Positions 4,931 to 64,000 of a DNA stretch of 64,000 nt are shown here, piece after piece. The notes beneath the pieces were generated by a model that was not told where the DNA came from, searched no databases, and worked only from the letters and a program-made list of their open reading frames with translations. Every line of letters begins with the position of its first letter. The stretch's first letter is position 1. A program made the translations under genes and the position numbers. This stretch comes from Heteronotia binoei (taxonomy: Eukaryota): contig NC_083227.1 in assembly GCF_032191835.1 (NCBI RefSeq), positions 6,324,001 through 6,388,000 of the forward strand. The letters are read 5' to 3'.

Positions 4931-4999
4931 CCCAAATATCTCTCAGGAACACTTTTAGATAAGGCCAGCTATTGTTGCTTGAATTAAATCCCCTCTCAC

Positions 5000-27639: not shown

Positions 27640-27668
27640 TTCATCTCCTGTCGGCTTTCCCCCAAGAT

Positions 27669-32257: not shown

Positions 32258-32925
32258 CTTAGCTTGGAGAAACGTCGACTGAGGGGTGACATGATAGAGG
32301 TTTACAAGATGATGCATGGGATGGAGAAAGTAGAGAAAGAAGTACTTTTCTCCCTTTCTCACAATACAAGAACTCATGGGCATTTGATGAAATTGCTGAG
32401 CAGTCAGGTTAAAACGGATAAAAGGAAGTACTTCTTCACCCAAAGGGGGATTAACATGTGGAATTCACTACCACAGGAGGTGGTGGCGGCTACAAGCATA
32501 GCAAGCTTCAAAAGGGGATTGGATAAGAATATGGAGCAGAGGTCTATCAGTGGCTATTAGCCACAGTGTGTGTGTGTGTGTGTGTATTGGCCTCTGTGTT
32601 GGACTGGATGGGCCATTGGCCTGATCTAGCATGGCTTCTCTTATGTTCTTATGTGACACAGAGTGTTGGACTGGATGGGCCACTGGCCTGATCCAACAGG
32701 GCTTCTCTTATGTTCTTATGTGACACAGAGTGTTGGACTGGATGGGCCACTGGCCTGATCCAACAGGGCTTCTCTTATGTTCTTATGTGACACAGAGTGT
32801 TGGACTGGATGGGCCACTGGCCTGATCCAGCATGGCTTCTCTTATGTTCTTATGTAACACAGAGTGTTGGACTGGATGGGCCATTGGCCTGATCCAACAT
32901 GGCTTCTCTTATGTTCTTATGTTCT
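32258..32925 (+). mobile_element. 5'-truncated CR1-A with about 5 tandem 67-bp 3' units, inserted 10 nt before the last-exon boundary
   Basis: ORF2 C-terminus at 32264-32560, then repeats ending ttatgttct|attctggcag. Confidence 0.9.
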
Positions 32926-32935
32926 ATTCTGGCAG

Positions 32936-45605: not shown

Positions 45606-45692
45606 ATTGCTACTCGGGCTGCCTTTGCAGCCTGCCTTCCCTGCAGCAGGTGGAGAAAGCCACGGGACCCGCAGCCTCCCTGCGAAGGGGCG

Positions 45693-45703
45693 GGGGCTTC
45701 CCC
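45693..45703. promoter_or_regulatory. NF-kB site resembling MHC class I enhancer A
   Basis: GGGGCTTCCCC versus enhancer A GGGGATTCCCC, about 165 nt upstream of the ATG in a CpG island. Confidence 0.6.
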
Positions 45704-45867
45704 AAAGGGAGCTTTCTCCTTCCCCCCCCCCCCCGCCTCCCCTGGGAGTTCACAGGGGACTTTGTTCCCTACCCCGCCCCCTCCACGGCCCGGGATCGGT
45801 CCAGCTTTCCCTGCCCGGATTCCCCTCCGAAGCATCTCGGCCCCGAGGGCGCGGCCAGGCTCCGGCG

Positions 45868-45946
45868 ATGTCGACCACCTGCGCGCCCTCCCCCCTGCTC
45901 TTCCTCCTGGTGGGGGTCGCCCCCCTGCTCGCCGGGGGCACGGCCG
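45868..45946 (+). CDS. MHC class I heavy chain exon 1 (signal peptide MSTTCAPSPLLFLLVGVAPLLAGGTA)
   Basis: Hydrophobic leader, CG|GTGAGT donor in phase 1, CpG island. Confidence 0.85.
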
Positions 45947-46008
45947 GTGAGTCAGTCGGGGGGGGGAGAGGGGGGGACCCGCGGACCCATCCCAGACGGG
46001 GGGGGGGG

Positions 46009-47728
46009 CTAGAGTTGCCAAGTCCAGTTCAAGAAATATCTGCAGACTTTGGGGATGGAGCCAGGAGACTTTGGAGTGGAGCCAGGAGACCTTGGGGTGG
46101 GGCCAAGAGACTTCGGGGGTGGAGCCGGGAGACTTTGGGGGTGGAGCCAGGAGACTTTGGGATGGAGCCAGGAGACCTTGGGTTGGAGCCAGGAGACTGG
46201 GGGTGGAGCTAGGAGATCTTGGGGTGGAGCCAGGAGACTTTGGGGATGGAGCCAGGAGACTTTGGAGTGGAGCCAGGAGACCTTGGGGTGGAGCCAAGAG
46301 ACTTTGGGGGCGGAGCCAGGAGACTTCGGGGGTGGAGCCACGAGACTCTGGAGTGGAGCCAGGAGACCTTGGGGTGGGGCCGGGAGACTTTGGGGGTGGA
46401 ACCAGGGGACCTTGGGGTGGAGCCAGGAGACTTTGGGGGTGGAGCTAGGAGATCTTGGGGTGGAGCCGGGAGACTTTGGGGGTGGAGCCAGGAGACTTTG
46501 GGATGGAGCCAGGAGACCTTGAGTTGGAGCCAGGAGACTGGGGGTGGAGCTAGGAGATCTTGGGGTGGAGCCGGGAGACTTTGGGGATGGAGCCAGGAGA
46601 CTTTGGAGTGGAGCCAGGAGACCTTGGGGTGGAGCCAAGAGACTTTGGGGGCGGGGCCAGGAGACTTTGGGGGTGGAGCCACGAGACTCTGGGGTGGAGC
46701 CAGGAGACCTTGGGGTGGGGCCGGGAGACTTTGGGGGTGGAACCAGGGGACCTTGGGGTGGAGCCAGGAGACTTTGGGGGTGGAGCTAGGAGATCTTGGG
46801 GTGGAGCCGGGAGACTTTGGGGGTGGGGCCAGGAGACTTTGGGATGGAGCCAGGAGACCTTGGGTTGGAGCCAGGAGACTGGGGGTGGAGCTAGGAGATC
46901 TTGGGGTGGAGCTGGGAGACTTTGGGGGTGGAGCCAGGAGACTTTGGGATGGAGCCAGGGGACCTTGGGGTGGAGCCAGGAGACTGGGGGTGGAGCTAGG
47001 AGATCTTGGGGTGGAGCCGGGAGACTTTGGGATAGAGCCAGGGGACCATGGGGTGGAGCTGGGAGACTTTGGGGTGGAGCCAGGAGACCTTGGGTTGGAG
47101 CCAGGGGACCATGGGGTGGAGCCGGGAGGCTTTGGGGGTGGAGCCAGGAGATCTTGGGGTGGAGCCGGGAGACTTTGGGAGTGGAGCCAGGAGACTTTGG
47201 GGTGGAGCCAGGAGACCTTGGAGTGGAGCCAGGAGACTTTGGGGTTGGAGCCAGAAGACCTTGGAGAGGAGCCAAGAGACTTAGGGGATGGAGCCAGAAG
47301 CAAGGGTGTGACAAGCATCATTGAACTCCTGGCCCTCACATTGAAAGGGACTGTCTGCAGACGTTTTAAATGCCTTCTCTCCATTGGAAATAATGAAGGA
47401 TAGGGGCACCTTCTTTGGGGGCTCATAGAATTGGACCCCCTGGTCCAATCCTTTTGAAACCTGGAGGGCCTTTTGGGAAGAGGCTGAGGATGCTATGATG
47501 AAAATTTGGTGTCTCTGCCTCAAAAAACAGCCCCTCCCTAGAGCCCGAGATACCCGCAGATCAATTCTCTATTATTTCCTATGGGAATTGGCCTCCATAG
47601 AGAATAATGGAGTGCCCAGCTGACATTTCCCTCCCTCCCCCCGCTTTCTGATGACCTTGAAGCGGGGGGGGGGGGCCAAACCGGGGGGGGGTATCCCCTG
47701 CCTCCACTTGGGGATTGGGCAACTAGAA
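46009..47728. repeat. MITE (family of 204-720) with an internal G-rich 20-22-bp VNTR (about 46045-47300)
   Basis: Unit ggggtggagccaggagact(t); identical ORF starts at 46219 and 46560 show a 341-bp higher-order repeat. Confidence 0.85.
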
Positions 47729-47949
47729 AAGAGTCACACGGGATGTGGAACTGGAGAACTAGTGTAGGCACCGTGTACCACTAACTCCTGTAATAGAGTT
47801 AACCCAAAAATAATTATTCATTAATTAAGTAGAAACCACAAGGGTATGGAAATTTCTTCAATGTCAAAAATTAGTTCCCACAAGGGAGTAAAGCTGACAG
47901 GCAAAACTGGTCTATTTCCCCCCTGTTTCGCTGCAAGCTTTATCTAAGC

Positions 47950-48083
47950 CAGGGGTGGCCAACGGTAGCTCTCCGGATGTATTTTTGCCTACAACTCAGC
48001 CCCAGCCATCAGCCATGCTGCCTGGGGCTGATGGGAGCTGTAGGCAAAAAAAACATCTGGAGAGCTACCGTTGGCCACCACTG
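47950..48083. mobile_element. Palindromic hAT MITE; also at about 2396-2510, 9137-9260 and 17735-17830
   Basis: caggggtggccaacggtagctctcc arms with a perfect TSD atctaagc. Confidence 0.85.
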
Positions 48084-50622
48084 ATCTAAGCCATCACTTA
48101 TTCGCTTTTCAAAACGACTTCCGCTCTCAAAGAACTTATCGTGGTAGTCCTTTCGCTTACCCTTGTGGTTGTGCTTTACCACTTAATTAATGAATAAATA
48201 TTTTGGGGCATAATTTCAATTTTTTTTTTGTATCGGTTTGTCCCAAGGGCCTTCTCACCATTGGATTACAGGAGTCAGTGGTACACACTGCCTACGCTGG
48301 TTCTCCAGTCCCACCTGGAGATTGGCAACCCTAGGGGGGACCCCCTAGAGATAGAGGTTTACAAGATAATGCATGGGATGGAGAAAGTAGAGAAAGAAGT
48401 CCTTTTCTGCCTTTCTCACAATACAAGAACTCGTGGGCATTCGATGAAATTGTTGAGCAGACAGGTTAAAACGGATAAAAGGAAGTACTTCTTCACCCAA
48501 AGGGTGATTAACATGTGGAATTCACTTTGGGGGTGGAGCTAGGAGATCTTGGGGTGGAGCCGGGAGACTTTGGGGTGGAGCCAGGAGACCTTGGAGAGGA
48601 GCCAAGAGACTTTGGGGATGGAGCCAGAAGCAAGGGTGGGACAAGCATCAGTGGCTATTAGCCACAGTGTGTGTATATATAAAAAAATTTTGCCACTGTG
48701 TGACACAGAGTGTTGGACTGGATGGGCCGTTGGCCTGATCCAACATGGCTTCTCTTATGTTCTTAATGCGTGTCTCCAGCCAGAACCCCCTTTGTGCATC
48801 CCAGCAGCACCCCCCATCCTAGAAAGGCTTTTGCTCCACAGTAACAGTGCTTGGCGAAGGGTCCAAGAAGTGTGCCTCCCGTCCTGTCTCCGTCCCCTCC
48901 TTCACCGGCTCTGCTTTCCAGACCCTCAGCATTTTCTCCCCCTTCGAGCTGGCTGGTTCTAGAGGCCCTGCAGGAGCTCCCCCCTAGGTAGGCAGGAGAG
49001 GGCGAGTGGGTGCCACACCTCTGTGCCTTCCCCCTAGCAGCCCTGGATGGGACAGGGCAGTCAAGCAGGAAGGCAGGAAGGAAAATAGATGGGAGGGAGG
49101 GAGTGGCGGAAAGAAAGCAACTTTAATTGTATTCTTTAACTGCAACTTTAACTGCATTCTCCAAGCTGCCATTTGATTTAGAGCGACACAAAATGTGTGT
49201 GAAAGAGCCACGGGTGGCTTCTGAGTTCCAGTTTGGCCACCCCCTGCTTAGAATACCATCCTTCTTTTTCCTTTCTCACCCAGATGAATGCTTGTCCATC
49301 GGTAGGTATGGATGGAACTCTGTCTGGGGAAAGTGATGCTCTGTATTCTTGGTGCTTGGGGAGGGGACTGTGGGAGGGCTTCTAGTGTCCTGGCCCCACT
49401 GGTGGACCTCCTGATGGCACCTGGGTTTTTTGACCACTGTGTGACACAGAGTGTTGGACTGGATGGGCCATTGGCCTGATCCAACATGGCTTCCCTTATG
49501 TTCTTATGTGACACAGAGTGTTGGAATGGATGGGTCATTGGCCTGATCTAGGCTTCTCTTATGTTTTTATAGATGGAACTCTCTGTCTGGGGCAGTGATG
49601 CTCTGTATTCTTGGTGCCGGGGGGGGGGGGGGCACAGTGGGAGAGTTTCTAGAAGTCCTGGCCCCACTGATGGACCTTCTAATGGCACAAGGTGGTTTTT
49701 GGTTTTTTGGTTTTTGCCACTGTGTGACACAGAGTGTTGGACTGGATAAGCCACTGGTCTGATCCAACATGGCTACTCTTATGTTCTTATGTTGTAAGCA
49801 AACGTTCCCTGGGCTAGAGCTTAACAGAGTTACAGCAGGGGATCACAGAACCATAGAGCTGGAAGGGAACCCCCATGGTCATCTAGTCCAACCCGTTACA
49901 CAATGCAAAACATTCACCAGTACTTCCTACTAAGTTCACAAGATCAGCATTGCTCTCAGTTTGGCCATCTAGCCTCGCTTTTAAAAGGAAGGAGAGCCCA
50001 CCACCTCCCAAGGAAGCCTATTCCGCTGAGGAACCAATCTAACTTTCAAGAATTGTCAGTAATCATAGAATCATAGAGTTGGAAGGGACCTCCAGGGCCA
50101 TCTAGTCCAACCCCCCTGCACAATGCAGGAAACTCACAAACACCTCCCCCTAAATTCACAAGATCTTCATTGCTGTCAGATGGCCACGTAGACTCTGTTG
50201 AAAAACCTCCAAGGAAGGAGAGCCCACCACCTCCCAAGGAAGCCTGTTCCACTGAGGAACCGCTCTAATGGTCAGGAAGTTCTTCCTAAGGTTGAGCCAG
50301 AAATTCCTTTGATTTAATTTCAACCCACTGGTTCTGGTCCTACCTTCTGGGGCCACAGAAATAACTCAGCAGCATCCTCTCTATAACAGCCCTTCTAGTC
50401 CTTGAAGATAGTGATCATATCACAGGCTAAACATGCTCAGCTCCTTCAACCTCTCCTCGTAGGACTTGGTCTCCGGACTCCTCACCATCTTTGTTGCCCT
50501 CCTCAGGACACATCTCAGCATGTCTATATCCTTCTTAAAATGTCGATTTAATGGTGGCACAAAGGGGGTCTCGGGGAGTCCTTGGTTGTTGCCCCGCAAC
50601 TCTAACCTCCTTTTGTTCCCAG

Positions 50623-50895
50623 ATGCCTTCTTTCGACACACCCTCCACTATTTCGAGACGGCCATCTGGGAGCCGGGCTGGCGGCTTCCCCAGTTCACCT
50701 CTTTGGCGTATGTGGATGACCGGCTGATTGGCAGCTACGACGGTCACGCTGACCAGTGCGTGCCTCAGTCGCCCTGGATAGACGACATCATCCATGATGA
50801 CTCTGACTTCTGGGCTAAGACCACGGAATGGGACTTTGCCTCAAGCCTTGTCATGGATCTGATGATTCTGAAGAATGCTCACAACCAGAGTAGGG
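50623..50895 (+). CDS. MHC class I exon 2 (alpha1)
   Basis: HTLHYFET, PQF..AYVDD, PQSPW and NQS motifs; cccag acceptor and GG|GTGAGT donor, phase 1. Confidence 0.92.
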
Positions 50896-50984
50896 GTGAG
50901 TGGAGGCACGCAAAGGGGCAAGGCTGCCGGGTATCCCTGAGGGTGTGAAAGGAGCATGGCGCAGAGTGGTAAAGCAGCAGGCGA

Positions 50985-51670
50985 GCCGGTTTGGTGTAGT
51001 GGTTAAGTATGTGGACTCTTATCTGGGAGAACTGGGTTTGATTCCCCACTCCTCCGCTTGCACCTGCTAGCATGGCCTTGGGTCAGCCATAGTTCTGGCA
51101 GAGGTTGTCCTTGAAAGGGCAGCTGCTGGGAGAGCCCTCTCAGCCCCACCCACCTCACAGGGTGTCTGTTGTGGGAGAGGAAGGGAAAGGAGATTGTGAG
51201 CTACTCTGAGACTCTTCGGAGTGGACGGAGGGATATAAATCCCATATCTTCATCTACCTCACAGGGTGTCTGTTGTGGGGGAGGAAGGTAAAGGAGATTG
51301 TGAGCCGCTTTGAGACTCTTCGGAGTGGAGGGCGGGATATAAATCCAATATCTTCATCTACCTCACAGGATATCTGTTGTGGGGGAGGAAGGTAAAGAAG
51401 ATAGTGAGCCGCTCTGAGACTCTTCGGAGTGGAGGGCGGGATATAAATCCAATATCTTCATCTACCTCACAGGGTGTCTGTTGTGGGGGAGGAAGGTAAA
51501 GGAGATTGTGAGCTGCTTTGAGACTCTTCGGAGTGGAGGGCAGGATATAAATCCAATATCTTCATCTACCTCACAGGGTGTCTTGTGGGCGGGGGGAGGT
51601 AAAGGAGATAGTGAGCCGCTCTGAGACTCTTCGGAGTGGAAGGTGGGCTGTAAATCCAATATCTTCTTCG
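50985..51670 (+). repeat. Squam3 SINE with its 104-bp 3'-terminal unit reiterated about 5 times
   Basis: ctacctcac recurs at 51254, 51358 and 51462. Confidence 0.85.
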
Positions 51671-53481
51671 GTATTGTGATCTGAACTCTCTGCTCACAAC
51701 CTGCTTTTTACCTCTACATTTCACATCCTCCCTCCTACACCGTCTTTTATTACCAAGGAAGAGGGATGGAGAGAAACATAAACATACATATTCCCCCCCC
51801 CTCTTCCCTCCATGCTTAATAACGGCCCCGTGGCGCAGAGTGGTAAAGCAGCAGTACTGCAGTACTGTGGTCTGAACTCTCTGCTCATGACCTGAGTTCG
51901 ATTCCGGCGGAAGCTGGTTTCAGGTAGCCGGCCCGAGGTTGACTCAGCCTTCCATCCTTCCGAGGTCGGTCAAATGAGTACCCAGCTTGTTGGGGGAAAA
52001 GCGTAGATGACTGGGGAAGGCAAGGGCAAACCACCCCATAAAAAGCCTGCCGTGAAAACGTCGTGAAAGCAACGTCACCCCAGAGTCGGAAGCAACTGGT
52101 GCTTGCACAGGGGACCTTTCCTTTTTCCATGCTTAATGGATCTTCATAGATGCTCCCAGGGGTCATTTAGTGGCAAAAGAGGTGCCAGAGCTCATTAGCA
52201 CAACTTATTTGCATATGCCACCTACCCCTCACCTCACCGGAAGGTGGACTAAATTACATCATCTCAGCATCTACCTTAAAATGCTGCTGCTGAAGAAGAA
52301 AAAGATATTGGATTTATATCCCGCCCTCTACTCTGAAGAGTTTCAGAGCGGCTCACTATCTCCTTTCCCTTCCTCCCCCACAACAGACACCCTGTGAGGC
52401 GGGTGGGGCTGAGAGGGCTCTCACAGCAGCTGCCCTTTCAAGGAAAACCTCTGCCAGAGCTCTGGCTGACCCAAGGCCATTCAGCAGCTGCAAGTGAAGG
52501 AATGGGGAATCAAACCCGGTTCTCCCAGATAAGAGTCCGCACACTTAACCACTTCACCAAACTGGCTCTCCTGGAATTAGAACTGTCATAATAAAACCAT
52601 ACTCCCATCAGACTTCTAAAATGATTTTTTCCTAGGTGGCCACAGTGGCACGAGGAAGATTTCCATCTGTCCGCTTTATAGGCATTTGCTATTTCTCCAT
52701 TGTTTGTGGGGAAAATATTAGAAAGTTTGTCAAATCCTAAGAATTCAGCAAAATTCTCTCAGGGAACCTGAACCATGGAGCCCAGAANNNNNNNNNNNNN
52801 NNNNNNNNNNNNNNNNNNNNNNNNNNNNNNNNNNNNNNNNNNNNNNNNNNNNNNNNNNNNNNNNNNNNNNNNNNNNNNNNNNNNNNNNNNNNNNNNNNNN
52901 NNNNNNNNNNNNNNNNNNNNNNNNNNNNNNNNNNNNNNNNNNNNNTAGAACCTTCCAGGGGACCTGAACCATGGAGCCCAGAAGCAAGTATTTGTGGGGA
53001 AGGAAGGGAGGGAGGGTGGGAGGGAGGGAGGAAGGGAGGGAGGGAGGGAGGAAGAAAGGATGGGAGGAAGAAAGGAAGGAAGGAAGTTTAGAGGTTCTAG
53101 AGCTCCACTCCTGTCAGCTGGATGCTCTTGAGTTAGGGAGACCTGGATGCTCTTGAGTTATACGGGCAGATCCTCCAAATGCAGCAGAAATGGGGGTCTC
53201 CATTTATTCACATTCTCAGTGCCACTGAGCCCCTGACTGCAACGCTTTGTGGCACACGACACACAGTCCTTGCTTAACAATCCGTGAAAACTGAGCTCCC
53301 CATCTGAGGTCATAGAGCTAAGCATCCAGCAGATCTGAAGCCCCCCACCCCGATATGCGCCTTAAGAATTCTCCAGGGCACTGGAACATTATACAGAATT
53401 CTGAAGGCTCAGGCTGGCGCAAGTGCCGGAGATTGGTCATGAGTGATTGACTCCAGAGTAGTGCTGAGAAATGCTATAGAG

Positions 53482-53688
53482 CAGGGGTCCCCAGCCCCTG
53501 GACTGCGGACTGGTACTGGTCCGTGGCCTGTTAACAACCGGGCCATGGAGTGAGGCAGAGACTTTCACCTACTCATTTAAAGATCCCCGGGGGGGGGGGC
53601 AGCAAAAACCCCAGCACCCCCACCAGTCTATGGAAAAACTGCCTTCCGCAAAACTGGTCCCTGGTGCCAAAAAGCTTGGGGGCCACTG
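53482..53688. mobile_element. hAT-Charlie MITE with MER1-like termini
   Basis: caggggtcccca...tgggggccactg with a perfect 8-bp TSD ctatagag. Confidence 0.85.
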
Positions 53689-53942
53689 CTATAGAGGGTG
53701 TTCCAAAATACTGAACGGAAGGTGTGCGAATATAGACTCCCATCCAGCTCACCCTGGCACACACCTGACTGTGTCATGCGCAGGAAGTCGGTGACCCTTT
53801 CTTTCCCCAAACACCCTCTTTCAGCTTCTATTCCTGTCTATTTATGATTCAGTTTATATGCTGCCTTTGCAGAGATGGGGCAAGGCAGCTTACATTTTAA
53901 TCCAAACCAATAAAACACAACCTTTAACAAGACACAACGAGT

Positions 53943-56860
53943 GAGAGCCAGTTTGGTGTAGTGGCTAAGTGCGCGGGCTCTTATCTGGGAGAACCGGGTT
54001 TGATTCCCCACTCCTCCACTTACAGCTGCTGGAATGGCCTTGGGTCAGCCACAGCTCTCTTATCTGGGAGAACCGGGTTTGATTCCCCCCTCCTCCACTT
54101 GCACCTGCTGGAATGGTCTTGGGTCAGCCACAGCTCTCTTATCTGGGAGAACCGGGTTTGATTCCCCACTCCTCCACTGGCACCTGCTGGAATGGCCTTG
54201 GGTCAGCCATAGCTCTCTTATCTGGGAGAAGCGGGTTTGATTCCCCACTCCTCCGCTTGCAGCTGCTGGAATGGCCTTGGGTCAGCCAGAGCTCTCTTAT
54301 CTGGGAGAAGCGGGTTTGATTCCCCACTCCTCCACTTGCACCTGCTGGAGTGGCCTTGGGTCAGCCAGAGCTCTCTTATCTGGGAGAAGCGGGTTTGATT
54401 CCCCCCTCCTCCACTTGCACCTGCTGGAATGGCCTTGGGTCAGCCACAGCTCTCTTATCTGGGAGAACCGGGTTTGATTCCCCACTCCTCCACTTACAGC
54501 TGCTGGAATGGCCTTGGGTCAGCCACAGCTCTCTTATCTGGGAGAACCGGGTTTGATTCCCCCCTCCTCCACTTGCACCTGCTGGAATGGTCTTGGGTCA
54601 GCCACAGCTCTCTTATCTGGGAGAACCGGGTTTGATTCCCCACTCCTCCACTGGCACCTGCTGGAATGGCCTTGGGTCAGCCATAGCTCTCTTATCTGGG
54701 AGAAGCGGGTTTGATTCCCCACTCCTCCGCTTGCAGCTGCTGGAATGGCCTTGGGTCAGCCAGAGCTCTCTTATCTGGGAGAACCGGGTTTGATTCCCCC
54801 CTCCTCCGCTTGCAGCTGCTGGAATGGCCTTGGGTCAGCCAGAGCTCTCTTATCTGGGAGAACCGGGTTTGATTCCCCCCTCCTCCACTTGCACCTGCTG
54901 GAATGGCCTTGGGTCAGCCACAGCTCTCTTATCTGGGAGAACCGGGTTTGATTCCCCCCTCCTCCACTTGCACCTGCTGGAATGGTCTTGGGTCAGCCAC
55001 AGCTCTCTTATCTGGGAGAACCGGGTTTGATTCCCCACTCCTCCGCTTGCAGCTGCTGGAATGGCCTTGGGTCAGCCAGAGCTCTCTTATCTGGGAGAAC
55101 AGGGTTTGATTCCCCACTCCTGCACTTGCACCTGCTGGAATGGTCTTGGGTCAGCCACAGCTCTCTTATCTGGGAGAACCGGGTTTGATTCCCCACTCCT
55201 CCACTTGCACCTGCTGGAATGGTCTTGGGTCAGCCACAGCTCTCTTATCTGGGAGAACCGGGTTTGATTCCCCACTCCTCCACTTACAGCTGCTGGAGTG
55301 GCCTTGGGTCAGCCACAGCTCTCTTATCTGGGAGAACCGGGTTTGATTCCCCACTCCTCCACTTGCACCTGCTGGAATGGTCTTGGGTCAGCCACAGCTC
55401 TCTTATCTGGGAGAACAGGGTTTGATTCCCCACTCCTCCGCTTGCAGCTGCTGGAGTGGCCTTGGGTCAGCCACAGCTCTCTTATCTGGGAGAACAGGGT
55501 TTGATTCCCCACTCCTCCATTTCCACCTGCTGGAATGGCCTTGGGTCAGCCATAGCTCTCTTATCTGGGAGAACCGGGTTTGATTCCCCACCCCTCCACT
55601 TACAGCTGCTGGAGTGGCCTTGGGTCAGCCACAGCTCTCTTATCTGGGAGAACAGGGTTTGATTCCCCACTCCTCCACTTACAGCTGCTGGAGTGGCCTT
55701 GGGTCAGCCACAGCTCTCTTATCTGGGAGAACCGGGTTTGATTCCCCACCCCTCCACTTACAGCTGCTGGAGTGGCCTTGGGTCAGCCACAGCTCTCTTA
55801 TCTGGGAGAACAGGGTTTGATTCCCCACCCCTCCACTTACAGCTGCTGGAGTGGCCTTGGGTCAGCCACAGCTCTCTTATCTGGGAGAACCGGGTTTGAT
55901 TCCCCACCCCTCCACTTACAGCTGCTGGAGTGGCCTTGGGTCAGCCACAGCTCTCTTATCTGGGAGAACAGGGTTTGATTCCCCACTCCTCCATTTCCAC
56001 CTGCTGGAATGGCCTTGGGTCAGCCACAGCTCTCTTATCTGGGAGAACCGGGTTTGATTCCCCACCCCTCCACTTACAGCTGCTGGAGTGGCCTTGGGTC
56101 AGCCACAGCTCTCTTATCTGGGAGAACAGGGTTTGATTCCCCACTCCTCCATTTCCACCTGCTGGAATGGCCTTGGGTCAGCCATAGCTCTCTCTTATCT
56201 GGGAGAACCGGGTTTGATTCCCCACTCCTCCACTTAAAGCTGCTGGAGTGGCCTTGGGTCAGCCACAGCTCTCTTATCTGGGAGAACCGGGTTTGATTCC
56301 CCACTCCTCCGCTTGCAGCTGCTGGAATGGCCTTGGGTCAGCCAGAGCTCTCTTATCTGGGAGAACGGGTTTGATTCCCCACTCCTCCACTTTCAGCTGC
56401 TGGAATGGCCATGGGTCAGCCATAGCTCTGTTATCTGGGAGAACCGGTTTTGATTCCCCACTCCTCCACTTGCAGCTGCTGGAATGGCCTTGGGTCAGCC
56501 ACAGCTCTCTTATCTGGCAGAACCTGGTTTGATTCCCCACTCCTCCACTTGCAGCTGCTGGAACGGCCTTGGCTTAGCCAGAGCTCTCGCAGAAGTTGTC
56601 CTGGAAAGGGCAGCTGCTGGGAGAGCCCTCTCAGCCCCTCCCACCTCACAGGGTGTCTGTTGTAGGCGAAGGAGATAAAGGAGGTTGTAAGCCGATCTGA
56701 GACTTTGTCCTTGAAAGGGCAGCTGCTGTGAGAGCTCTCACAGCCCTACCCACCTCACAGGGTGTCTGTTGTGGGGGACGAAGATATAGGAGATTGTAAG
56801 CCACTCTGAGTCTCTGAGTTCAGAGAGAAGGCTGGGGTATAAATCTGCAGTCTTCTTCAA
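53943..56860 (+). repeat. Squam3 SINE expanded to about 2.9 kb by about 33 copies of the 79-bp unit (MHC I intron 2)
   Basis: ORF starts recur every 79 bp; one head at 53943 and one tail at about 56600-56860. Confidence 0.92.
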
Positions 56861-57161
56861 AGAAGCCAGGGCGTAAAATGAGCATTAAACACAGACTGAG
56901 CAGTGGAAAGAGGTCAACAAGACACGTTTGGGAATAGGTCTGTCCAAGTAAGAACTGACCACTGGAGCAGGGTGCATGCCCCACCCCCCGCACCGTTCTG
57001 AACTTGGCCAGCCTCTCCAGAAAGATGTGGTGGTTGATCTTATTGAAAACCAGCATGGGATTTAGGGGAATCAGTGGAAAGTCCCAAATAATTCGAGACC
57101 AGAAAGAACTTTTCATGTTCTGCTGGCTTTGAGGCCTCTGGTTTGCGTGTGTCTTCTACAG

Positions 57162-57428
57162 GGATCCACACCCTACAGGTGCTCTCTGGCTGCGAACTGA
57201 ATGAGGACAACGGAGCCACCAGAAGGTTTGCGAAGTACGGCTACAACGGGAGGGACTTCCTCAGCTGGGACCAGGAGACGCTCACCTGGACGGCAATGGA
57301 TGCAGAGGCTGAGCCAACCAAGAGGAAGTGGGAAGCCCAGCGGCACCGTGGGAAACTCTGGAAGCAATTCCTGACCAACACCTGCGTGGAGTGGCTGCGC
57401 TACGGGAAGGAGACCCTGCTGGAAGCTG
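57162..57428 (+). CDS. MHC class I exon 3 (alpha2)
   Basis: HTLQ..SGCEL, YGYNGRDF, TKRKW and TCVEWL motifs; ctacag acceptor and TG|GTGAGG donor. Confidence 0.95.
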
Positions 57429-57467
57429 GTGAGGAGGGGAAATGGGGTGGCAGAGAGAAGGAAGAGG

Positions 57468-57871
57468 CAGGGCAGCTGCGTGGGAGTAGGCAGTCGCCTA
57501 GGGCGCCACCAGGCCTAGGGGGCACCACTGGGCGCCCCTTCCCGGACGCATGACTCTGGCTCCTGACCGCTGTCACCTCGTCCTCTCTCATCGCCAAGCT
57601 GCCCTCAACAAAGCCAAGCCACCCCCCTCTCCCCGATGTGCGACTTGGTCTCCCACCTCATCCTATCCTGCCATCCTCCTTCCTGGAGTGGCCAGCAAGC
57701 ACTTCTTCGCACGATTTTTAAATAATTTATCACATTTTTTTGAAATATTAAAAATCAGTAAATTAAAAATGTGAAAAGTTTCTCTTCAATTACGCTGTAT
57801 TTTTTTAATAATGGGGTGGGGGTGGGGCAGGTGATTCGCCTAGGTTGCCAGAAAGCCTAGCACCAGCCCTG
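57468..57871. mobile_element. hAT MITE 39 nt downstream of the alpha2 exon
   Basis: CAGGGC...GCCCTG ends with a perfect TSD ggaagagg. Confidence 0.85.
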
Positions 57872-59004
57872 GGAAGAGGGCAGTTTGGTGTAGTGGTTAA
57901 GTGCTCGGACTCTTATCTGGGGAAACCGGGTTTGATTCCCCACTCCTCCACTTGCACCTGCTGGAATGGCCTTGGGTCAGCCAGAGCTCTCTTATCTGGG
58001 AGAACCGGGTTTGATTAACCACTCCTCCACTTGCACCTGCTAGCATGGTCTTGGGTCAGCCAGAGCTCTGGCAGAGGTTGTCCTTGAAAGGGCAGCTGCT
58101 GTGAGAGCCCTCTCAGCCCCACCCACCTCACAGGGTGTCTGTTGTGGGGGGAGAAGAGATGGGAGATTGTAAGCCACTCTGAGTCTCTGATTCATGGAGA
58201 AGGGCAGGGTATAAATCTGCAGTCTTCTTCTTTCTTCTTCCCTTGCTGGGAAGCCTCCTTGGGCCAAGGGGAAAGTACCCTGGTAACCAACCACCACCCC
58301 TCAAGGACTTCCTGAGAATCTAGACCAGGGGTATCATACTAATTTGTTATGAGGGCCGGATCTGACATAAATGAGACCTTGTCGGGCGGGCCATTTCAGG
58401 GTGGGCCATGCATGTTCCTATTTTAGATTAGGTACCTGAGATATAAACTTAATAAGGAACACAAACACAATTAAAGATTTTTTTTTACAAAAAAAACTTA
58501 AAATAAAACATGTTTAAAATATTAACATTAGTCTTAAAGGTGCTTTCTTTGTATTTCTCCCNNNNNNNNNNNNNNNNNNNNNNNNNNNNNNNNNNNNNNN
58601 NNNNNNNNNNNNNNNNNNNNNNNNNNNNNNNNNNNNNNNNNNNNNNNNNNNNNNNNNNNNNNNNNNNNNNNNNNNNNNNNNNNNNNNNNNNNNNNNNNNN
58701 NNNNNNNNNNNNNNNNNNNNNNNNNNNNNNNNNNNNNNNNNNNNNNNNNNNNNNNNNNNNNNNNNNNNNNNNNNNNNNNNNNNNNNNNNNNNNNNNNNNN
58801 NNNNNNNNNNNNNNNNNNNNNNNNNNNNNNNNNNNNNNNNNNNNNNNNNNNNNNNNNNNNNNNNNNNNNNNNNNNNNNNNNNNNNNNNNNNNNNNNNNNN
58901 NNNNNNNNNNNNNNNNNNNNNNNNNNNNNNNNNNNNNNNNNNNNNNNNNNNNNNNNNNNNNNNNNNNNNNNNNNNNNNNNNNNNNNNNNNNNNNNNNNNN
59001 NNNN

Positions 59005-59660
59005 CTGACTTCAATACCGAGGAAGTTGGTAGAAACCATTATCAAGGACAGAATGAGTAGGCACATTGATGAACACGAGTTATTGAGGAAGACTCAGCAT
59101 GGGTTCTGTAGGGGAAGATCTTGCCTCACTAACCTGCTACATTTCTTTGAGGGGGTGAACAAACATGTGGACAAAGGAGACCTGATAGATGTTGTTTACC
59201 TTGACTTCCAGAAAGCTTTTGATAAAGTTCCTCATCAAAGGCTCCTTAGAAAGCTTGAGAGTCATGGAGTAAAAGGACAGGTCCTCTTGTGGATCAAAAA
59301 CTGGCTGAGTAATAGGAAGCAGAGAGTGAGTATAAATGGGCAGTCTTCGCAGTGGAGGACGGTAAGCAGTGGGGTGCCGCAGGGCTTGGTACTGGGTCCC
59401 ATGATAATGCATGGGATGGAGAAAGTAGAGAAAGAAATACTTTTCTCCCTTTCTCACAATACAAGAACTCGTGGGCATTCGATGAAATTGCTGAGCAGAA
59501 AGGTTAAAACGGATAAAAGGAAGTACTTCTTCACCCAAAGGGTGATTAACATGTGGAATTCACTGCCACAGGAGGTGGTGGCGGCCACAAGCATAGCCAC
59601 CTTCAAGAGGAGGTTAGATAAAAATATGGAGCAGAGGTCCATCAGTGGCTATTAGCCACA

Positions 59661-59706
<46 letters not shown>

Positions 59707-59836
59707 TTGGCCGCTGTGTGACACAGAATGTTGGACTGGATGGGCCAGTGGCCTGATCCAACATGGCTTCTCTTATGTTCTTATGTGACACAGTGTTGGA
59801 CTGGATGGGCCACTGGCCTGATCCAACATGGCTTCT
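59005..59836 (+). mobile_element. CR1-A fragment with an internal deletion of about 0.6 kb; flanked by N gaps
   Basis: Translation jumps from GLVLGPM to IMHGMEK relative to ORF2 at 24673-27639. Confidence 0.9.
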
Positions 59837-60219
59837 NNNNNNNNNNNNNNNNNNNNNNNNNNNNNNNNNNNNNNNNNNNNNNNNNNNNNNNNNNNNNNNN
59901 NNNNNNNNNNNNNNNNNNNNNNNNNNNNNNNNNNNNNNNNNNNNNNNNNNNNNNNNNNNNNNNNNNNNNNNNNNNNNNNNNNNNNNNNNNNNNNNNNNNN
60001 NNNNNNNNNNNNNNNNNNNNNNNNNNNNNNNNNNNNNNNNNNNNNNNNNNNNNNNNNNNNNNNNNNNNNNNNNNNNNNNNNNNNNNNNNNNNNNNNNNNN
60101 NNNNNNNNNNNNNNNNNNNNNNNNNNNNNNNNNNNNNNNNNNNNNNNNNNNNNNNNNNNNNATGTAAGGAAGCAGGGAGTTGCTGCATTCTTAAGGCCCA
60201 ATACTGGTTATTTTCACAG

Positions 60220-60504
60220 AGCCACCAATGGTTCGCATAACCCACAAGGCAGGATCGGAGGGCCTGGAGACTCTCGTCTGCCGACTCCACGGCTTCTACC
60301 CCAAAGAGATCGATGTGACATGGAGAAAGGGCAGGGAAGTTTGGCACCAGGACATCCTGACGGGGGGTGTCGTCCCCAACTCAGATGGGACTTACCACAC
60401 CTGGATAAGCATTGATGTTGACCCCAAAGAGAGGGGCCACTACCGGTGCCACGTGGAACATGATGGCCTTCCAGAGCCCCTGGACTTGGCCTGGGAGGAG
60501 CCAG
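60220..60504 (+). CDS. MHC class I exon 4 (alpha3, Ig C1 domain)
   Basis: LVCRLHGFYPKEIDVTW, PNSDGTYH and YRCHVEHDGL motifs; canonical splice sites. Confidence 0.97.
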
Positions 60505-60914
60505 GTGAGAGACAGAAGGGGGTTGGGGTGGCTTTTGGGGGGGGAAGTCAGCAGATTATAGGTGCCATTATATCACGGGAAGTTGTGAATTTGGTTATGT
60601 TCCCCTACTGAGCTATATAGTTATTTTCCCCTGGTTCCTTAGAGCCAAGAAAAGCATGTGCTTCAGATTAGTTTCATTTTCCTATGCTGGTGATTTGCTG
60701 AACTCTCACCTTCCACACAATAGCACTCCGCTAATTCTCCCCAGCAGTTAAGAAAAGGCGATTAAGAAAAGGCAAACACTCATCCCTTCAGCAGCACCCT
60801 CTCCCTCTCTCTCTCAGAGCTCAACTGACTGTACTCTGCCTCTAGTGAGGTGCAGCCTTAGAAACGCAAAGAGGGTGGGGCTAGCAGTCAGGCAACATAG
60901 ACTCTTCCAATCAG

Positions 60915-61720
60915 CAACAATAACAACAACAACAGCAACAACAATTTTTATTTGTATCCCGCCCTCCCCGCCGAAGCATAGTCATACAATCAATAAAACT
61001 ACATTGACAATTTAATTAAAATTCTAATTAAAATCTAAAGTTAATAAATTAATAAAATATATACTGGAGCTATGATTACGTTTACATTTATGATGGCGAG
61101 TTCTTTAGCAGTTCCCTCTTAATCGGTGAAGGCCAACCGGAAGAGGGTAGTCTTGCAGGCCCTGCGGAACTGTTCAAGGGCCCGCAGGGCCCGCATTTCC
61201 TCTGGAAGTTGGTTCCACAGGCGTGGAGCCATGGTAGAGAAAGCTCGGTTGCGGGTGCTTTGCAACTTCACCTCTTTCGGCCCGGGAATGTTTAGCAGGT
61301 CTTCCCAGCTGACCTCAGTGCTCTCTGGGGTTCATACGGGGAGAGACGGTCCCTAAGGTAGGCAGGTCCTCACCGTATAGGGCTTTAAAGGTGAAAAACA
61401 GCACTTTGTAACGAATCCAGTATACAACTGGCAACCAGTGCAGTTCGCGCAGCCCAGGCTGTATGTGACCCCACATTGGGAGCCCCAACAGCAATCTAGC
61501 CGCCGCATTCTGCACTAGCTGCAGCTTCCGGGTTCGGTACAGAGGCAGCCCCATGTAGAGGGCATTACAGTAGTCTAGTCTCGAGGTGACCGTTGCATGA
61601 ATCACAGTTGCCAGATCTTGACGCTCTAGGAAAGGAGCCAGCTGCTTTGCCCGCCTCAGGTGAAAAAAGGCTGACTTGGCAGTGGCTGCAATCTGGGCCT
61701 CCATTGATAGTGAAGGCTCC
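60915..61720 (-). mobile_element. L2 LINE 3' fragment
   Basis: SRLDYCNALY.GLP...LQLVQNAAARLL...LHWLPV motifs and a (TTG) tail. Confidence 0.88.
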
Positions 61721-61952
61721 AGTAAAACTCCCAGGCTCCTGACCCGGCACCTGATGCAATCAGCTACACTTGGCTACAGCCCTGTTGAAACGGACAACGG
61801 AAACAGCAGTTCTTCTTCCCCAGCAAGCAAACACACAAATTTCAGACTCTCTGCATCCACACAGTAGCACTCAACTAATTCTCCCCAGCAGCTAAGAAAA
61901 GGCAGTTAAGAAAAGGCAGTTAAGAAAAGGCAAACACTCACCCCTTCAGCAG

Positions 61953-62009
<57 letters not shown>

Positions 62010-62132
62010 AGCTCAACTGACTGTGACTGTTGATCTGTCCCTTGCAGTGCCACATTCTGCATAGATATTTCTGCTGGAGGCCTTGCAGATATGGGGCCAG
62101 CCTGAGTAGATGCATTTTTCCTCTCATTTCAG

Positions 62133-62219
62133 CATCCGAAGTGGGGCTCATCGTGAGAGTCCTGCTAGGGGTCATGGCTGCTCTCATCCTGGTGGGGGCC
62201 GGGCTCACCTTCCACATCA
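62133..62219 (+). CDS. MHC class I exon 5 (connecting peptide and transmembrane, ASEVGLIVRVLLGVMAALILVGAGLTFHI)
   Basis: tttcag acceptor, hydrophobic helix and CA|GTAAGT donor, phase 1. Cytoplasmic exons were not identified in the window. Confidence 0.88.
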
Positions 62220-63236
62220 GTAAGTAAAATGCCGCTTGAAAGGGGCCGTGGCGGAGTGGGAGAGCATCTGCTCGGCATGCAGAAGGCCCCCAAGGTCAAG
62301 CTCCAGCATCTCCAGTTAAGAGGTCAAGGTCAGGGGTGGCCGATCTGTGGCTCTTTCACACATGTTGTGTGGCTCTTGAGGGCCCCACGAGCCCATTGGA
62401 CAGCTTGGAGAAGGAATGTCTCTCTTTAAATCACTTTGCCAGGCCAAGCCAGCTGGTGTGAGGGGCTTGGAGAACACCCTTAAAAGTTTCTATCTTTTCT
62501 TTTCTCTCTCTCTCTCTTGGTCCCTCCCCCCCTATCCCTCTTTCCTGCCCATTTGTTTGCTTTGTTTCNNNNNNNNNNNNNNNNNNNNNNNNNNNNNNNN
62601 NNNNNNNNNNNNNNNNNNNNNNNNNNNNNNNNNNNNNNNNNNNNNNNNNNNNNNNNNNNNNNNNNNNNNNNNNNNNNNNNNNNNNNNNNNNNNNNNNNNN
62701 NNNNNNNNNNNNNNNNNNNNNNNNNNNNNNNNNNNNNNNNNNNNNNNNNNNNNNNNNNNNNNNNNNNNNNNNNNNNNNNNNNNNNNNNNNNNNNNNNNNN
62801 NNNNNNNNNNNNNNNNNNNNTCTAGTAGTTCAGTTTATTACCATTAATGATCAGTTATAAAAGGCTGCTTTTATTCTTGCCTGATGCTCTCTCTCTCTCT
62901 CTGTATGTGTAATAATATATAATTGTGCAATGTTTGGACAGGGGCATGGTTGCATCTCAGGAGGTGGTGGGCCAGAGTGAGCTCTTTCACACATGTTGTG
63001 TGGCTCTTGAGGGCCCCACCGCCCCCGCTGGCCAGTTTGGAGAAGGAGTTTCTCTCCTTAAATCACTTTGCCAGGCCAAGCCAGCTGGTGTAGGAGGCTA
63101 GGGAAACACGTTTAAAGTTCTTTTTTTTCTTTCTTTTCTCTCTCTCTCTGTCCCTCCGTTCCTCTCCTTCCTTTCCTGCCCATCGGTTTGCTTTGTTTCT
63201 CTTCCCCCCTACCTCCCTCCTTCCCCCCATCTATTA

Positions 63237-64000
63237 TGAACATAAGAGAAGCCATGTTGGATCAGGCCAACGGCCCATCAAGTCCAACACTCTGTGTCAC
63301 ACAGTGGCAAAAAATTTTATATACACACATACACTGTGGCTAATACCAACTGATGGACCTGTACTCCATATTTTTATCTAAGCCCTTCTTGAAGGTGGCT
63401 ATACTTGTGGCCGCCACCACCTCCTGTGGCAGTGAATTCCACATGTTAATCACCCTTTGGGTGAAGAAGTACTTCCTTTTATCCGTTTTAACCTGTCTGC
63501 TCAGCAATTTCATCGAATGCCCACGAGTTCTTGTATTGTGAGAAAGGGAGAAAAGTACTTCTTTCTCTACTTTCTCCATCCCATGCATTATCTTGTAAAC
63601 CTCTATCATGTCACCCCCGCAGTTGACGTTTCTCCAAGCTAAAGAGTCCCAAGCGTTTCAACCTTTCTTCATAGGGAAAGTGCTCCAGCCCTTTAATCAT
63701 TCTAGTTGCCCTTCTCTGGACTTTCTCCAATGCTATAATATCCTTTTTGAGGTGCGGCGACTAGAACTGCACACAGTACTCCAAATGAGACCGCACCATC
63801 GATTTATACAGGGGCATTATGATACTGGCTGATTTGTTTTCAATTCCCTTCCTAATAATTCCCAGCATGGCGTTGGCCTTTTTTATTGCAAACGCACACT
63901 GTCTTGACATTTTCAGTGAGTTATCTACCACGACCCCAAGATCTCTCTCTTGGTCAGTCTCTGCCAGTTCACACCCCATCAACTTGTATTTGTAGCTGGG
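63237..64000 (-). mobile_element. CR1-A copy running off the window end
   Basis: Near-identical to 24530-25330. Confidence 0.92.

Follow-up and report, generated by a model that had tools for sequence, protein, structure and literature searches.

Chicken YF1*7.1 (PDB 3p73) and mouse H2-M3 both have a normal MHC class I fold with an altered groove, which takes lipids in the former and N-formylated peptides in the latter. MR1, a mammalian, metabolite-presenting and monomorphic-type class I relative, forms a Schiff base with its ligand through Lys43. Among solved structures, the best sequence relative of the gene described here is the classical-type chain of Anolis carolinensis (PDB 7cpo), with E values of 1e-12 for alpha1 and 5e-37 for alpha3. 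In the Galapagos marine iguana, Amcr-UA is regarded as non-classical on the basis of sequence, expression and purifying selection, according to its description (PMC2483932). As described there, Amcr-UA keeps most peptide-binding residues, whereas the gecko gene has lost half of its anchors; Amcr-UA is without transmembrane and cytoplasmic regions, whereas the gecko gene keeps a transmembrane exon. Searches of the accessible literature for gecko class I lineages returned no relevant paper, the matches being swamped by the GeCKO CRISPR library.

The window (the whole stretch of DNA analysed, 64,000 nucleotides) carries the first five exons of an MHC class I heavy-chain gene on its + strand, encoding, in order, the leader, alpha1, alpha2, alpha3 and transmembrane domains:

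45692..45723, + strand: candidate class I promoter elements, 145-175 bases 5' of the ATG (sequence reading)
45868..45946, + strand: exon 1, ATG and signal peptide MSTTCAPSPLLFLLVGVAPLLAGGTA, GT donor, phase 1 (sequence)
50623..50895, + strand: exon 2, alpha1, with Y7, Cys45, F59, a helix 2 residues short, A84 and the NQS sequon
50757..50759, + strand: unpaired Cys45, TGC codon, groove-floor strand (sequence alignment)
52788..52945, no strand: assembly gap in intron 2 (flanking exon blocks colinear with H. binoei locus L001)
57162..57428, + strand: exon 3, alpha2, with C101, T134, T143, K146, W147, F159 and C164
57394..57399, + strand: junction of an apparently private 12-base in-frame deletion (pairwise alignment to L001)
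58562..59004, no strand: assembly gap in intron 3 (bridged by the RNA joint 57428 to 60220)
59837..60161, no strand: assembly gap in intron 3, ending 58 bases upstream of the exon 4 acceptor
60220..60504, + strand: exon 4, full alpha3 Ig C1-set domain; both cysteines present, and the conserved W close to the end
62133..62219, + strand: exon 5, connecting peptide and transmembrane segment ASEVGLIVRVLLGVMAALILVGAGLTFHI (sequence, RNA joint)
62156..62158, + strand: AGA codon (Arg) in the transmembrane segment (comparison with the orthologue and the clade)

When the frames were re-derived from the sequence, 330 codons were open across the five exons, with no stops, frameshifts or splice-site losses. 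All exon borders are in phase 1, with AG acceptors (exon 1 starts at its ATG instead) and GT donors. The gene is intact-looking over its five exons, in agreement with the preliminary description of open, in-phase exons with canonical splice sites. All three assembly gaps are intronic and leave the exons untouched, and exon order and orientation across them agree with L001, which comes from an independent assembly, and to which exon 2 aligns ungapped at 96% nucleotide identity (L001 12150-12674) and the sequence from 60162 onwards aligns at L001 16795-17199. The region was assembled with many small gaps. In exon 1, the H. binoei orthologue, P0165, can be aligned over the 3' half only. Upstream of the gene are a kappaB-like element (GGGGGCTTCCCC, 45692-45703) and an ISRE-like element (AGCTTTCTCCTTCC, 45710-45723), which resemble promoter motifs and are possible class I promoter elements; the case for them is weak, the stretch that holds them aligning poorly with the region upstream of the H. 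binoei orthologue.

Downstream of exon 5, a scan of 62220-64000 for acceptors and open frames found no convincing cytoplasmic exons. In the orthologue, exon 6 follows exon 5 at a distance of 1.2 kb, where KQQGSTYKATP is encoded; by motif and DNA comparison, it is without a counterpart in 62220-64000 of the window, a stretch that contains a CR1 copy and a locally duplicated segment. Local tblastn of the joined translation against the window found no second class I gene. The adjoining genes in the window are SCAN/KRAB/C2H2 zinc-finger genes, accompanied by CR1 elements, with no core-MHC/TAP setting.

One exon per domain, with introns all of phase 1, is the layout of an MHC class I heavy chain, and exon-by-exon searches of the window assign the expected domains. 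Pfam MHC_I (PF00129, cut-off 28.3 bits) matches exon 2 (E 2e-10, 40.8 bits) and exon 3 (E 2e-24, 86.7 bits), and C1-set (PF07654, cut-off 21 bits) matches exon 4 (E 1e-14, 55.1 bits). The cysteine pairs 101/164 and 203/259 and the NQS sequon at N86 are present in the exon translations and in the alignments to solved chains. Alpha3 aligns with that of the anole over 90 residues without a gap (E 5e-37), including a Gln-Asp pair that falls on the anole's own; the pair lies in the loop that in HLA holds the CD8-contact residue Gln226.

Residue states in the groove were read from HMMER alignments to solved class I chains and from a comparison of squamate class I sequences. At the eight positions that bind peptide termini, the window gene has Y7, F59, A84, T143, K146, W147 and F159, and 171 is deleted. 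Four of the eight are kept, two have changed from Tyr to Phe, one is R84A (position 84 is R in birds) and one lies within the deletion, so that the gene does not carry the eight-residue peptide-terminus set of classical class Ia. Alignment to the solved chains confirmed Y59F, R84A and Y159F as initially reported, and alignments and exon translations agree on the retention of Y7, T143, K146, W147, the N86 sequon and both disulfides. The earlier wording that most anchors were lost was slightly strong: half of the eight are changed, but Y7, T143, K146 and W147 remain.

The distance from W60 to N86 is 25 residues in the window, compared with 27 in 63 of 64 other squamate class I sequences, which bears out an alpha1 helix two residues short. 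The same segment is 52% hydrophobic, against 30% in the classical-like gecko consensus, and its description as a hydrophobic helix therefore stands. A PDB search with the alpha1 helix alone (41 residues) gave no match at E values up to 10, and the alpha1 alignment between anole 7cpo and the window ends at residue 69, where the helices diverge. The preceding W51-W60 loop is three residues longer than in HLA; this is the squamate norm, and the loop has the same length in 7cpo, to which it aligns ungapped. Cys45 is found in all 14 full-length rows of the clade described below and in the partial sequences P0169 and P0162, compared with 1 of 64 other squamate class I sequences. It aligns ungapped to Lys43 of the MR1 sequence P0109, so that where MR1 has a reactive lysine on the groove floor the gecko clade has a cysteine. 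MR1 is mammalian and is not an orthologue; squamate proteins called 'MR1-like' owe the name to automatic annotation. We know of neither a shortened alpha1 helix nor Cys45 in YF1*7.1 or H2-M3. These two molecules provide a precedent for losing the clamp on a free N-terminus, without any specific relationship to the gecko gene; matches to YF1*7.1 (3p73; alpha1 E 6e-7, alpha2 8e-18) do not surpass the matches to classical chicken chains.

For phylogenetic comparison with squamate class I sequences, each domain was aligned separately from the exon translations, and the alignment columns were concatenated. The window falls inside a gecko-only clade of 14 tree rows from Gekko, Heteronotia and Paroedura (100/100 support, stem 0.42), and its pairing with P0165 is also supported at 100/100. 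The clade as a whole is defined as P0165, P0018, P0159-P0163 and P0166-P0173. C45, F59, F159 and a W60-N86 length of 25 occur in the window and in all 14 rows of the clade, and the loss of R84 and the hydrophobic alpha1 helix are common to the clade, which has several paralogues in Gekko. Partial Eublepharis and Gekko sequences carry the signature as well. The clade is old, and its groove changes are at least as old as the Eublepharidae/Gekkonidae split. It may not be strictly gecko-only, given a Hemicordylus protein (P0213) that shares C45, F59, I143 and F159, and whose grouping with the clade is not rejected (p-AU 0.34). A full protein scan and a search with full-length P0018 matched hundreds of relatives.

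Gecko class I genes fall into three groups: classical-like genes, a second divergent clade, and the clade of the window gene. The classical-like genes form a separate clade and keep Y59, R84, Y159, Y171 and full-length helices, so that the indels of the window gene are not the standard state of classical gecko class I; one classical-like H. binoei gene (P0175) is annotated around a TAP-like ABC transporter. The suggestion of a gecko-specific class Ib lineage is thus upheld, the clade being distinct from the classical-like genes. Mean entropy of the groove helices in the clade and the classical-like genes is 1.00 vs 0.95 for alpha1 and 0.76 vs 0.78 for alpha2; overall the helices are not more conserved in the clade than in the classical-like genes, and the DLMILKN segment alone stands out. 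Assignment of the window gene to the non-classical class I type is supported, and its sequence indicates a further member of a gecko-wide family of such genes.

The closest member is P0165, with the automatic RefSeq name 'major histocompatibility complex class I-related gene protein-like' (GCA_032191835.1, CM063329.1 at 6.41 Mb). It and the window gene are orthologues. They are 90% identical in alpha1, 92% in alpha2, 95% in alpha3 and 89% in the transmembrane domain (94% over the three extracellular domains), and comparison with L001 shows the same order of exons and introns, with 89-96% of nucleotides identical. P0165 resembles the window gene in exon layout, C45, F59, F159, the short alpha1 helix and transmembrane type. 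It differs in having the residues LHTH in alpha2 and a transmembrane Gly, whereas the window gene is without LHTH and has Arg; at the AGA position, Gly (IVGVLL) is found in the orthologue and in most clade members with the same transmembrane type. Conversely, P0165 has Leu at the conserved alpha3 Trp, which the window keeps, and a different leader, and its intron 2 is about 1.9 kb long compared with 6.3 kb in the window. Between the two genes dN/dS is 0.49 (dS 0.062), with 8 derived non-synonymous changes on the branch of the window and 7 on that of the orthologue, counts that rule out faster decay on the window's branch. In alpha1, 9 non-synonymous and 3 synonymous differences separate the two, which is close to neutral.

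Exon 3 has 88 codons where 92 are expected. Solved class I chains (duck, dog, HLA-A68 and anole 7cpo) confirm the four-residue gap reported after CVEWLR, which takes position 171; 7cpo has four more residues after CVEWL than the window. The orthologue DNA at the junction reads GAGTGG-CTGCACACACAC-CTGCGC and its protein at the same site is CVEWLHTHLRYGKE. The residues removed are LHTH or HTHL, at positions of about 168-172, and the deletion is flanked by CTGC direct repeats. From C164 to G175 there are 8 residues in the window, 12 in 77 of 78 other sequences and 13 in one, the four-residue deletion being found only in the window among 79 squamate sequences. From this comparison, the alpha2 deletion appears to be a recent, private 12-base loss in this genome's copy of the gene. 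Both helices are indeed shortened, as first described, but not by one design, since the alpha1 change is clade-wide and the alpha2 change private.

Transcription of the lineage, as RNA contigs related to the window's allele, is supported. Contigs 96-97% identical to the window, with a depth of 23-36 in one metatranscriptome, span the joints of exons 3-4 (57428 to 60220) and 4-5 (60504 to 62133) with GT..AG borders. They differ from the window at 8-9 sites per exon and do not come from its allele. The contig over exon 3 covers 57161-57398, and both RNA contigs stop aligning exactly at 57395-57398, past which 14 and 16 letters are unlike those of the window; this is what would be expected of an undeleted transcript. 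Two raw RNA-seq runs with a related-species label, sampled at 6%, gave an exon depth below about 2. No read-level match to a deleted transcript was found in the RNA contigs or the two sampled runs. The clade member P0159 is carried on an intronless contig of 1321 bases.

The fold was predicted for P0165, the orthologue, and not for the spliced protein of the window itself. Its AlphaFold2 model (pLDDT 89.4) has the usual helices, and its best Foldseek matches are anole 7cpo, chicken, duck and mouse class I (E 4e-30), with a TM of 0.85-0.90 to 7cpo; there were no CD1 chains among the 50 best structural matches. A CD1-like or MR1-like fold is not indicated; the P0165 model matches ordinary class I best. 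Identity with MR1 was rejected, given a Cys in place of Lys43 and nearest relatives that are squamate class I genes.

The preliminary description had proposed a groove for lipid or other non-peptide ligands, and none of the tests supported this: the P0165 fold is nearest to peptide-presenting class I, not to CD1, and K146, W147, T134 and N86 are kept. Presentation of lipids or small metabolites in the manner of CD1, YF1*7.1 or MR1, with Cys45 tethering the ligand covalently where MR1 has Lys43, seems to us rather unlikely. The hydrophobicity of the alpha1 helix (52% against 30% in the classical-like gecko consensus), the loss of N-terminus anchors and the fixation in the clade of a Cys aligned with Lys43 would fit such a role. 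They have to be set against the predicted fold, with CD1 absent from its top 50 matches, a score of 20.5 bits for the CD1-type Pfam family MHC_I_3 on the window (cut-off 35), K146 and W147 mostly kept in the clade, and paralogues that vary at groove-helix positions about as much as classical-like genes. It is very improbable, on the other hand, that the gene is a classical, polymorphic, peptide-presenting class I whose odd residues are merely typical of its lineage. The N86 glycan site, T134, K146 and W147 are those of such a molecule, and any two of the window, the H. binoei reference and the RNA contigs are about 3% apart in exons 3-4. However, intron divergence at least equals exon divergence, as expected from species divergence and not from balanced alleles, and the three are related sequences that resemble different lineages, not alleles. 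The classical-like gecko genes, moreover, sit in a separate clade with intact anchors, one of them beside a TAP-like gene, whereas the window gene has SCAN/KRAB zinc-finger neighbours.

Two further explanations concern the window copy itself. A non-classical gene that is otherwise functional could be represented here by a null or decaying allele, with open frames that reflect recent inactivation; we consider this unlikely but by no means far-fetched. The alpha2 deletion is seen once among 79 sequences, a conserved transmembrane Gly is now Arg, the tail exons may be lost (exon 6 of the orthologue being without a counterpart in 62220-64000), the deleted transcript is without a read-level match and alpha1 dN/dS is near 1. 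Yet 330 codons have no stops, frameshifts or splice-site losses, derived non-synonymous changes are balanced between window and orthologue (8 and 7), and it is the orthologue that has lost the conserved alpha3 Trp. The 20 hydrophobic residues after the Arg suffice for a membrane span, and the four deleted residues amount to about one helical turn, so that the rest of the helix stays roughly in register. That the 12-base deletion is instead an assembly or polishing error in a CA-rich stretch between CTGC repeats, the real gene being like the orthologue, is improbable. The many small gaps of the region, the low complexity of the missing bases (CTGCACACACAC) with their direct-repeat flanks, and the undeleted appearance of all transcripts seen would agree with an error; but the loss is exactly in frame with clean sequence on either side, microhomology-mediated deletions of this kind are common as real events, and the transcripts differ from the window at so many other sites that they are uninformative on the source individual.

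We therefore favour, as the probable reading, an old gecko class I clade with a remodelled groove and a restricted, unusual ligand set, of which the window carries a member with an additional deletion. On the stem of the clade, the alpha1 helix would have lost two residues and turned hydrophobic, and the residues hydrogen-bonding the free peptide N-terminus would have changed (Tyr59 to Phe, Tyr159 to Phe, and Tyr171 to His, Leu or Tyr). Arg84 would have been lost at the same stage and an unpaired Cys fixed at groove-floor position 45. The remainder is that of an ordinary class I molecule: signal peptide, N86 glycan site, disulfides, T134, K146/W147, alpha3 and transmembrane segment. The product would thus be a beta2-microglobulin-bound surface molecule holding its ligand in a class I-type groove with the free amino terminus unclamped, which would imply a restricted, unusual ligand set instead of the classical peptide repertoire. 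The window copy would add its private 12-base deletion, which takes roughly a single turn from the long alpha2 helix, close to its C-terminal end and next to the A pocket, and a change from Gly to Arg where the transmembrane segment begins. Ligands would be shown to alpha-beta T cells or NK-type receptors. A more specific role for Cys45, as a covalent tether for thiol-reactive or disulfide-forming small ligands or Cys-containing peptides under the short hydrophobic alpha1 helix, is a speculative idea that we think improbable. If true, it would make the clade a new kind of ligand-capturing class I molecule and a Cys-based parallel to Schiff-base capture by MR1, independently evolved in a lineage that, as stated in a reference which PMC9679377 cites, is without gamma-delta T cells.

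To our knowledge, no vertebrate group examined is without non-classical class I lineages of its own, and for this reason a gecko lineage is no surprise in kind. Squamate MHC biology is nevertheless thinly described, and the clade is a defined candidate for unconventional antigen presentation in reptiles that is open to testing. Its conserved Cys45 is an obvious target for mutagenesis, and the window allele, as a natural four-residue deletion variant, would show how much change at the end of the alpha2 helix the class I fold tolerates.

The class I gene (45868-62219, forward strand) was re-derived from the sequence as five open, in-phase exons with canonical splice sites, in agreement with the preliminary description, and Pfam domains fall on exons 2-4. 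All acceptors are AG and all donors GT, the introns are all phase 1, and 330 codons are open. The window contains five N runs, three of which lie within the gene, all intronic.

Exons of the class I gene and assembly gaps within it
45868-45946, +, exon 1: ATG and leader; open frame, GT donor
50623-50895, +, exon 2: alpha1; Pfam MHC_I
52788-52945, assembly gap, intron 2
57162-57428, +, exon 3: alpha2; Pfam MHC_I
58562-59004, assembly gap, intron 3
59837-60161, assembly gap, intron 3; its end lies 58 bases short of the exon 4 acceptor
60220-60504, +, exon 4: alpha3; Pfam C1-set
62133-62219, +, exon 5: connecting peptide and transmembrane segment; open frame

Since the last intron 3 gap ends ahead of its acceptor, exon 4 is complete. 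The window is colinear with the orthologous locus L001 (Heteronotia binoei GCA_032191835.1), order and orientation being equal on either side of every gap. RNA contigs from a public metatranscriptome span two of the joints, 57428 to 60220 and 60504 to 62133, each flanked by GT..AG. A 549-base RNA contig reaches 297 bases beyond the exon 3 start on the upstream side; exon 2 together with 24 bases of exon 1 has this length, and these bases probably represent exon 2 and part of exon 1. No second class I gene was detected in the whole window by tblastn with the gene model.

Searched by a full HMMER scan, the alpha2 exon gave 1157 matches, of which the best single-domain match was P0018 (Gekko kuhli), and a word search with full-length P0018 gave 172 named squamate class I proteins. 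The nearest is P0165, a Heteronotia binoei protein with 90% identity in alpha1, 92% in alpha2, 95% in alpha3 and 89% in the transmembrane segment. Exons and flanking introns are 89-96% identical to L001, the locus of the P0165 gene, at the nucleotide level and in equal order, so that the two genes are orthologous, in related but different genomes. For a maximum-likelihood tree of 79 sequences, alpha1, alpha2 and alpha3 were aligned apart and the columns concatenated. The window gene groups with P0165 (100/100 support) within an all-gecko clade of 14 rows, drawn from Gekko kuhli, G. japonicus, H. binoei, Paroedura picta and one transcript contig (100/100, stem 0.42 changes per site); the partial Eublepharis protein P0169 also has the clade signature. 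A separate clade of 22 rows unites the classical-like gecko class I genes, and a third gecko clade holds five. Grouping of P0213, from the cordylid Hemicordylus capensis, with the gecko clade was not rejected (p-AU 0.34), and the lineage may therefore be older than geckos. P0213 has C45, F59, I143, F159 and a non-Tyr residue at 171 in common with this clade, and a full-length alpha1 helix.

Groove residues were assigned by HMMER alignments to solved class I chains, some being read directly from exon translations, and the residue list of the preliminary description was borne out by these alignments. Y7, T143, K146 and W147 are retained, and the translations also show T134, the two cysteine pairs and, at N86, an NQS sequon. 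Substitutions give F59, A84 (where birds and reptiles have Arg) and F159, and a four-residue gap follows CVEWL(R) relative to duck, dog, HLA-A68 and anole. Between W51 and W60 there are three residues more than in HLA; this is the squamate norm, since the anole classical-type structure 7cpo aligns there ungapped. The helical half of alpha1 is strongly divergent and alone has no PDB match at E up to 10. The alpha3 domain is of the usual kind and aligns without gaps to 90 residues of anole class I (E 5e-37).

Most of these features belong to the clade as a whole.

Groove traits in the gecko clade (14 rows) and in other squamate class I sequences (64 rows)
Cys45: clade 14/14; others 1/64
Phe59 and Phe159: clade 14/14; others mostly Tyr
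W60 to N86 length: clade 25 in all 14 rows; others 27 in 63/64
Arg84: clade 2/14; usual in others
Position 171: clade His, Leu or Tyr; others mostly Tyr
Position 143: clade mostly Ile or Val, with Thr in the window gene and P0165; others mostly Thr

The clade consensus for the alpha1 helix, GWDFASSLVTDLMILKN, is hydrophobic; the window gene has 13 hydrophobic residues among the 25 of this helix, whereas the classical-like gecko consensus has 8 among 27. The refuting condition named in the preliminary description, that the indels be standard in classical gecko class I genes, does not hold: those genes keep their anchors (Y7, Y59, R84, T143, W147, Y159 and Y171), and the 27-residue spacing prevails outside the clade. 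An ABC transporter with ABC_membrane and ABC_tran domains lies within the annotated range of one such gene, P0175 of H. binoei, the arrangement expected of a classical gene linked to TAP. The proposal of a gecko class Ib lineage is thus supported.

The shortening of alpha2 has a different history. From C164 to G175 there are 8 residues in the window gene, 12 in 77 of the 78 other sequences and 13 in the remaining one. The orthologue reads GAGTGG CTGCACACACAC CTGCGCTAC and the window GAGTGG CTGCGCTAC, a loss of 12 bases between CTGC direct repeats. Because this loss is found in the window only, the alpha2 shortening is, to judge from the sequences compared, a recent private event outside the clade's design. 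Both groove helices are indeed short, as first described, but they do not reflect one design, the alpha1 change being clade-wide.

Between window and orthologue, exons 2-5 differ by 12 synonymous and 21 non-synonymous changes (dS 0.062, dN 0.030, ratio 0.49); alpha1, with 9 non-synonymous versus 3 synonymous, is near neutral. When polarised by other clade members, 8 derived non-synonymous changes fall to the window and 7 to P0165, and therefore the window branch decays no faster. A conserved alpha3 Trp is kept in the window and lost in P0165. Near the start of the transmembrane segment the window gene has Arg, followed by 20 hydrophobic residues, where P0165 and most related segments have Gly.

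The correctly spliced RNA contigs are 96-97% identical to the window, differing mainly at third codon positions, and 9 of the 16 listed differences are the H. binoei state, so that they derive from a third, related sequence. In both contigs the match ends exactly at 57395-57398, where 14 and 16 more letters fail to fit, a pattern that would be expected of a transcript with the 12 bases undeleted. The clade member P0159 lies on an intronless 1321-base contig. Together these contigs show expression of the lineage, not of the deleted allele. Raw RNA-seq under a related species label gave exon depth below about 2 in a 6% sample of each run. Other RNA contigs that match the end of alpha3 (60505; loose ends, runs X1 and X4) go on into a different exon reading ...GPSWGLILGV..., which shows that these samples also contain transcripts of class I paralogues that use another transmembrane exon.

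In the orthologue, exon 6 (KQQGSTYKATP) follows 1.2 kb after exon 5; no counterpart was found in the window from exon 5 to 64000. This interval holds a local duplication (62336-62568 and 62925-63219), a gap (62569-62820) coinciding with the CT microsatellite of the H. binoei locus (L001 18669-18781) and a CR1 copy, in which the window ends before any counterpart of the exon 6 region (L001 18965-19879). A subclade of Gekko and Eublepharis members of the gecko clade (P0018, P0160, P0161, P0159 and P0169) has a short hydrophobic C-terminus, for example ...SSVSDLGFTGRGLVGVTIGAILLGATVLF, and no cytoplasmic tail; this looks like a GPI-anchor signal, unlike a transmembrane segment with tail. At the 5' end, conservation between the orthologues is poor across the promoter and the first half of exon 1 (window 45640-45946, L001 9760-10100), exons 2-5 being 95-97% identical, and the two leaders have ATGs a few bases apart and different signal peptides.

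Elsewhere the window carries zinc-finger genes (SCAN, KRAB and C2H2) together with CR1 elements, and the class I gene lies at the margin of a SCAN/KRAB zinc-finger cluster, not amid antigen-processing genes. The H. binoei orthologue maps to 6.41 Mb, with a further class I cluster on the same chromosome at 9.39-9.48 Mb.

Other features of the window
4955-5422, -, SCAN-domain exon
17182-17730, +, SCAN-domain exon
24673-28577, -, apparently intact CR1-type LINE: 988-codon ORF2 (endonuclease and reverse-transcriptase motifs), 302-codon ORF1
32899-34800, +, C2H2 zinc-finger exon, 633 codons
45395-45470, tRNA-derived SINE; the class I ATG follows about 400 bases downstream
46044-47297, 21/43-base minisatellite, intron 1: 59 copies, higher-order period 341; short copy 48524-48627
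53978-56588, tandem array of a 79-base unit: 33 copies, 94% matches; also 5848-6370 and 57910-58069
59005-59655 and 63340-64000, truncated 3' CR1 copies

Intron 2 measures 6.3 kb, versus about 1.9 kb in the H. binoei orthologue, and the 79-base array, which occupies much of it, would account for much of the extra length. Overlapping ORFs of 62-68 codons run in rows along both strands of the array; the intron 1 minisatellite likewise gives spurious ORFs on either strand, the longest with 405 codons. Pieces related to the SINE recur in the class I introns.

The fold was predicted on the orthologue ectodomain (P0165:25-310), standing in for the window protein, with a 71-sequence alignment. The model has a mean pLDDT of 89.4 (78-82 around the alpha1 helix) and a normal sheet-and-helix pattern. 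Its long alpha2 helix passes through LHTH almost to its end; the window deletion thus takes about one turn, 3-6 residues before the helix terminus and beside the A pocket. Anole 7cpo was the top Foldseek match, followed by class Ia chains of chicken, duck and mouse, with no CD1 chain among the best 50. By BLASTP alignment, the clade's Cys45 falls on Lys43 of the MR1 sequence P0109.

Among squamates, the marine iguana has a described non-classical class I gene (PMC2483932), and a map of the anole MHC exists (PMC9679377); the searchable literature yielded no account of class I lineages in geckos. The class I gene with a remodelled groove noted earlier is confirmed: it is a non-classical MHC class I gene, in a gecko clade uncharacterised in the literature searched. 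It has a class I fold and a C-terminal clamp that is partly kept, it lacks the three tyrosine hydroxyls by which a free N-terminus is held, and its floor strand bears an unpaired Cys that is fixed in the clade; from this, its product would be a beta2-microglobulin-bound surface molecule with a restricted ligand set that is not anchored by a free amino terminus. The lipid or non-peptide ligand originally proposed, now put as a lipid or metabolite, is hypothetical; the groove may hold peptides that are modified or extended, or small hydrophobic compounds, or it may have no ligand.
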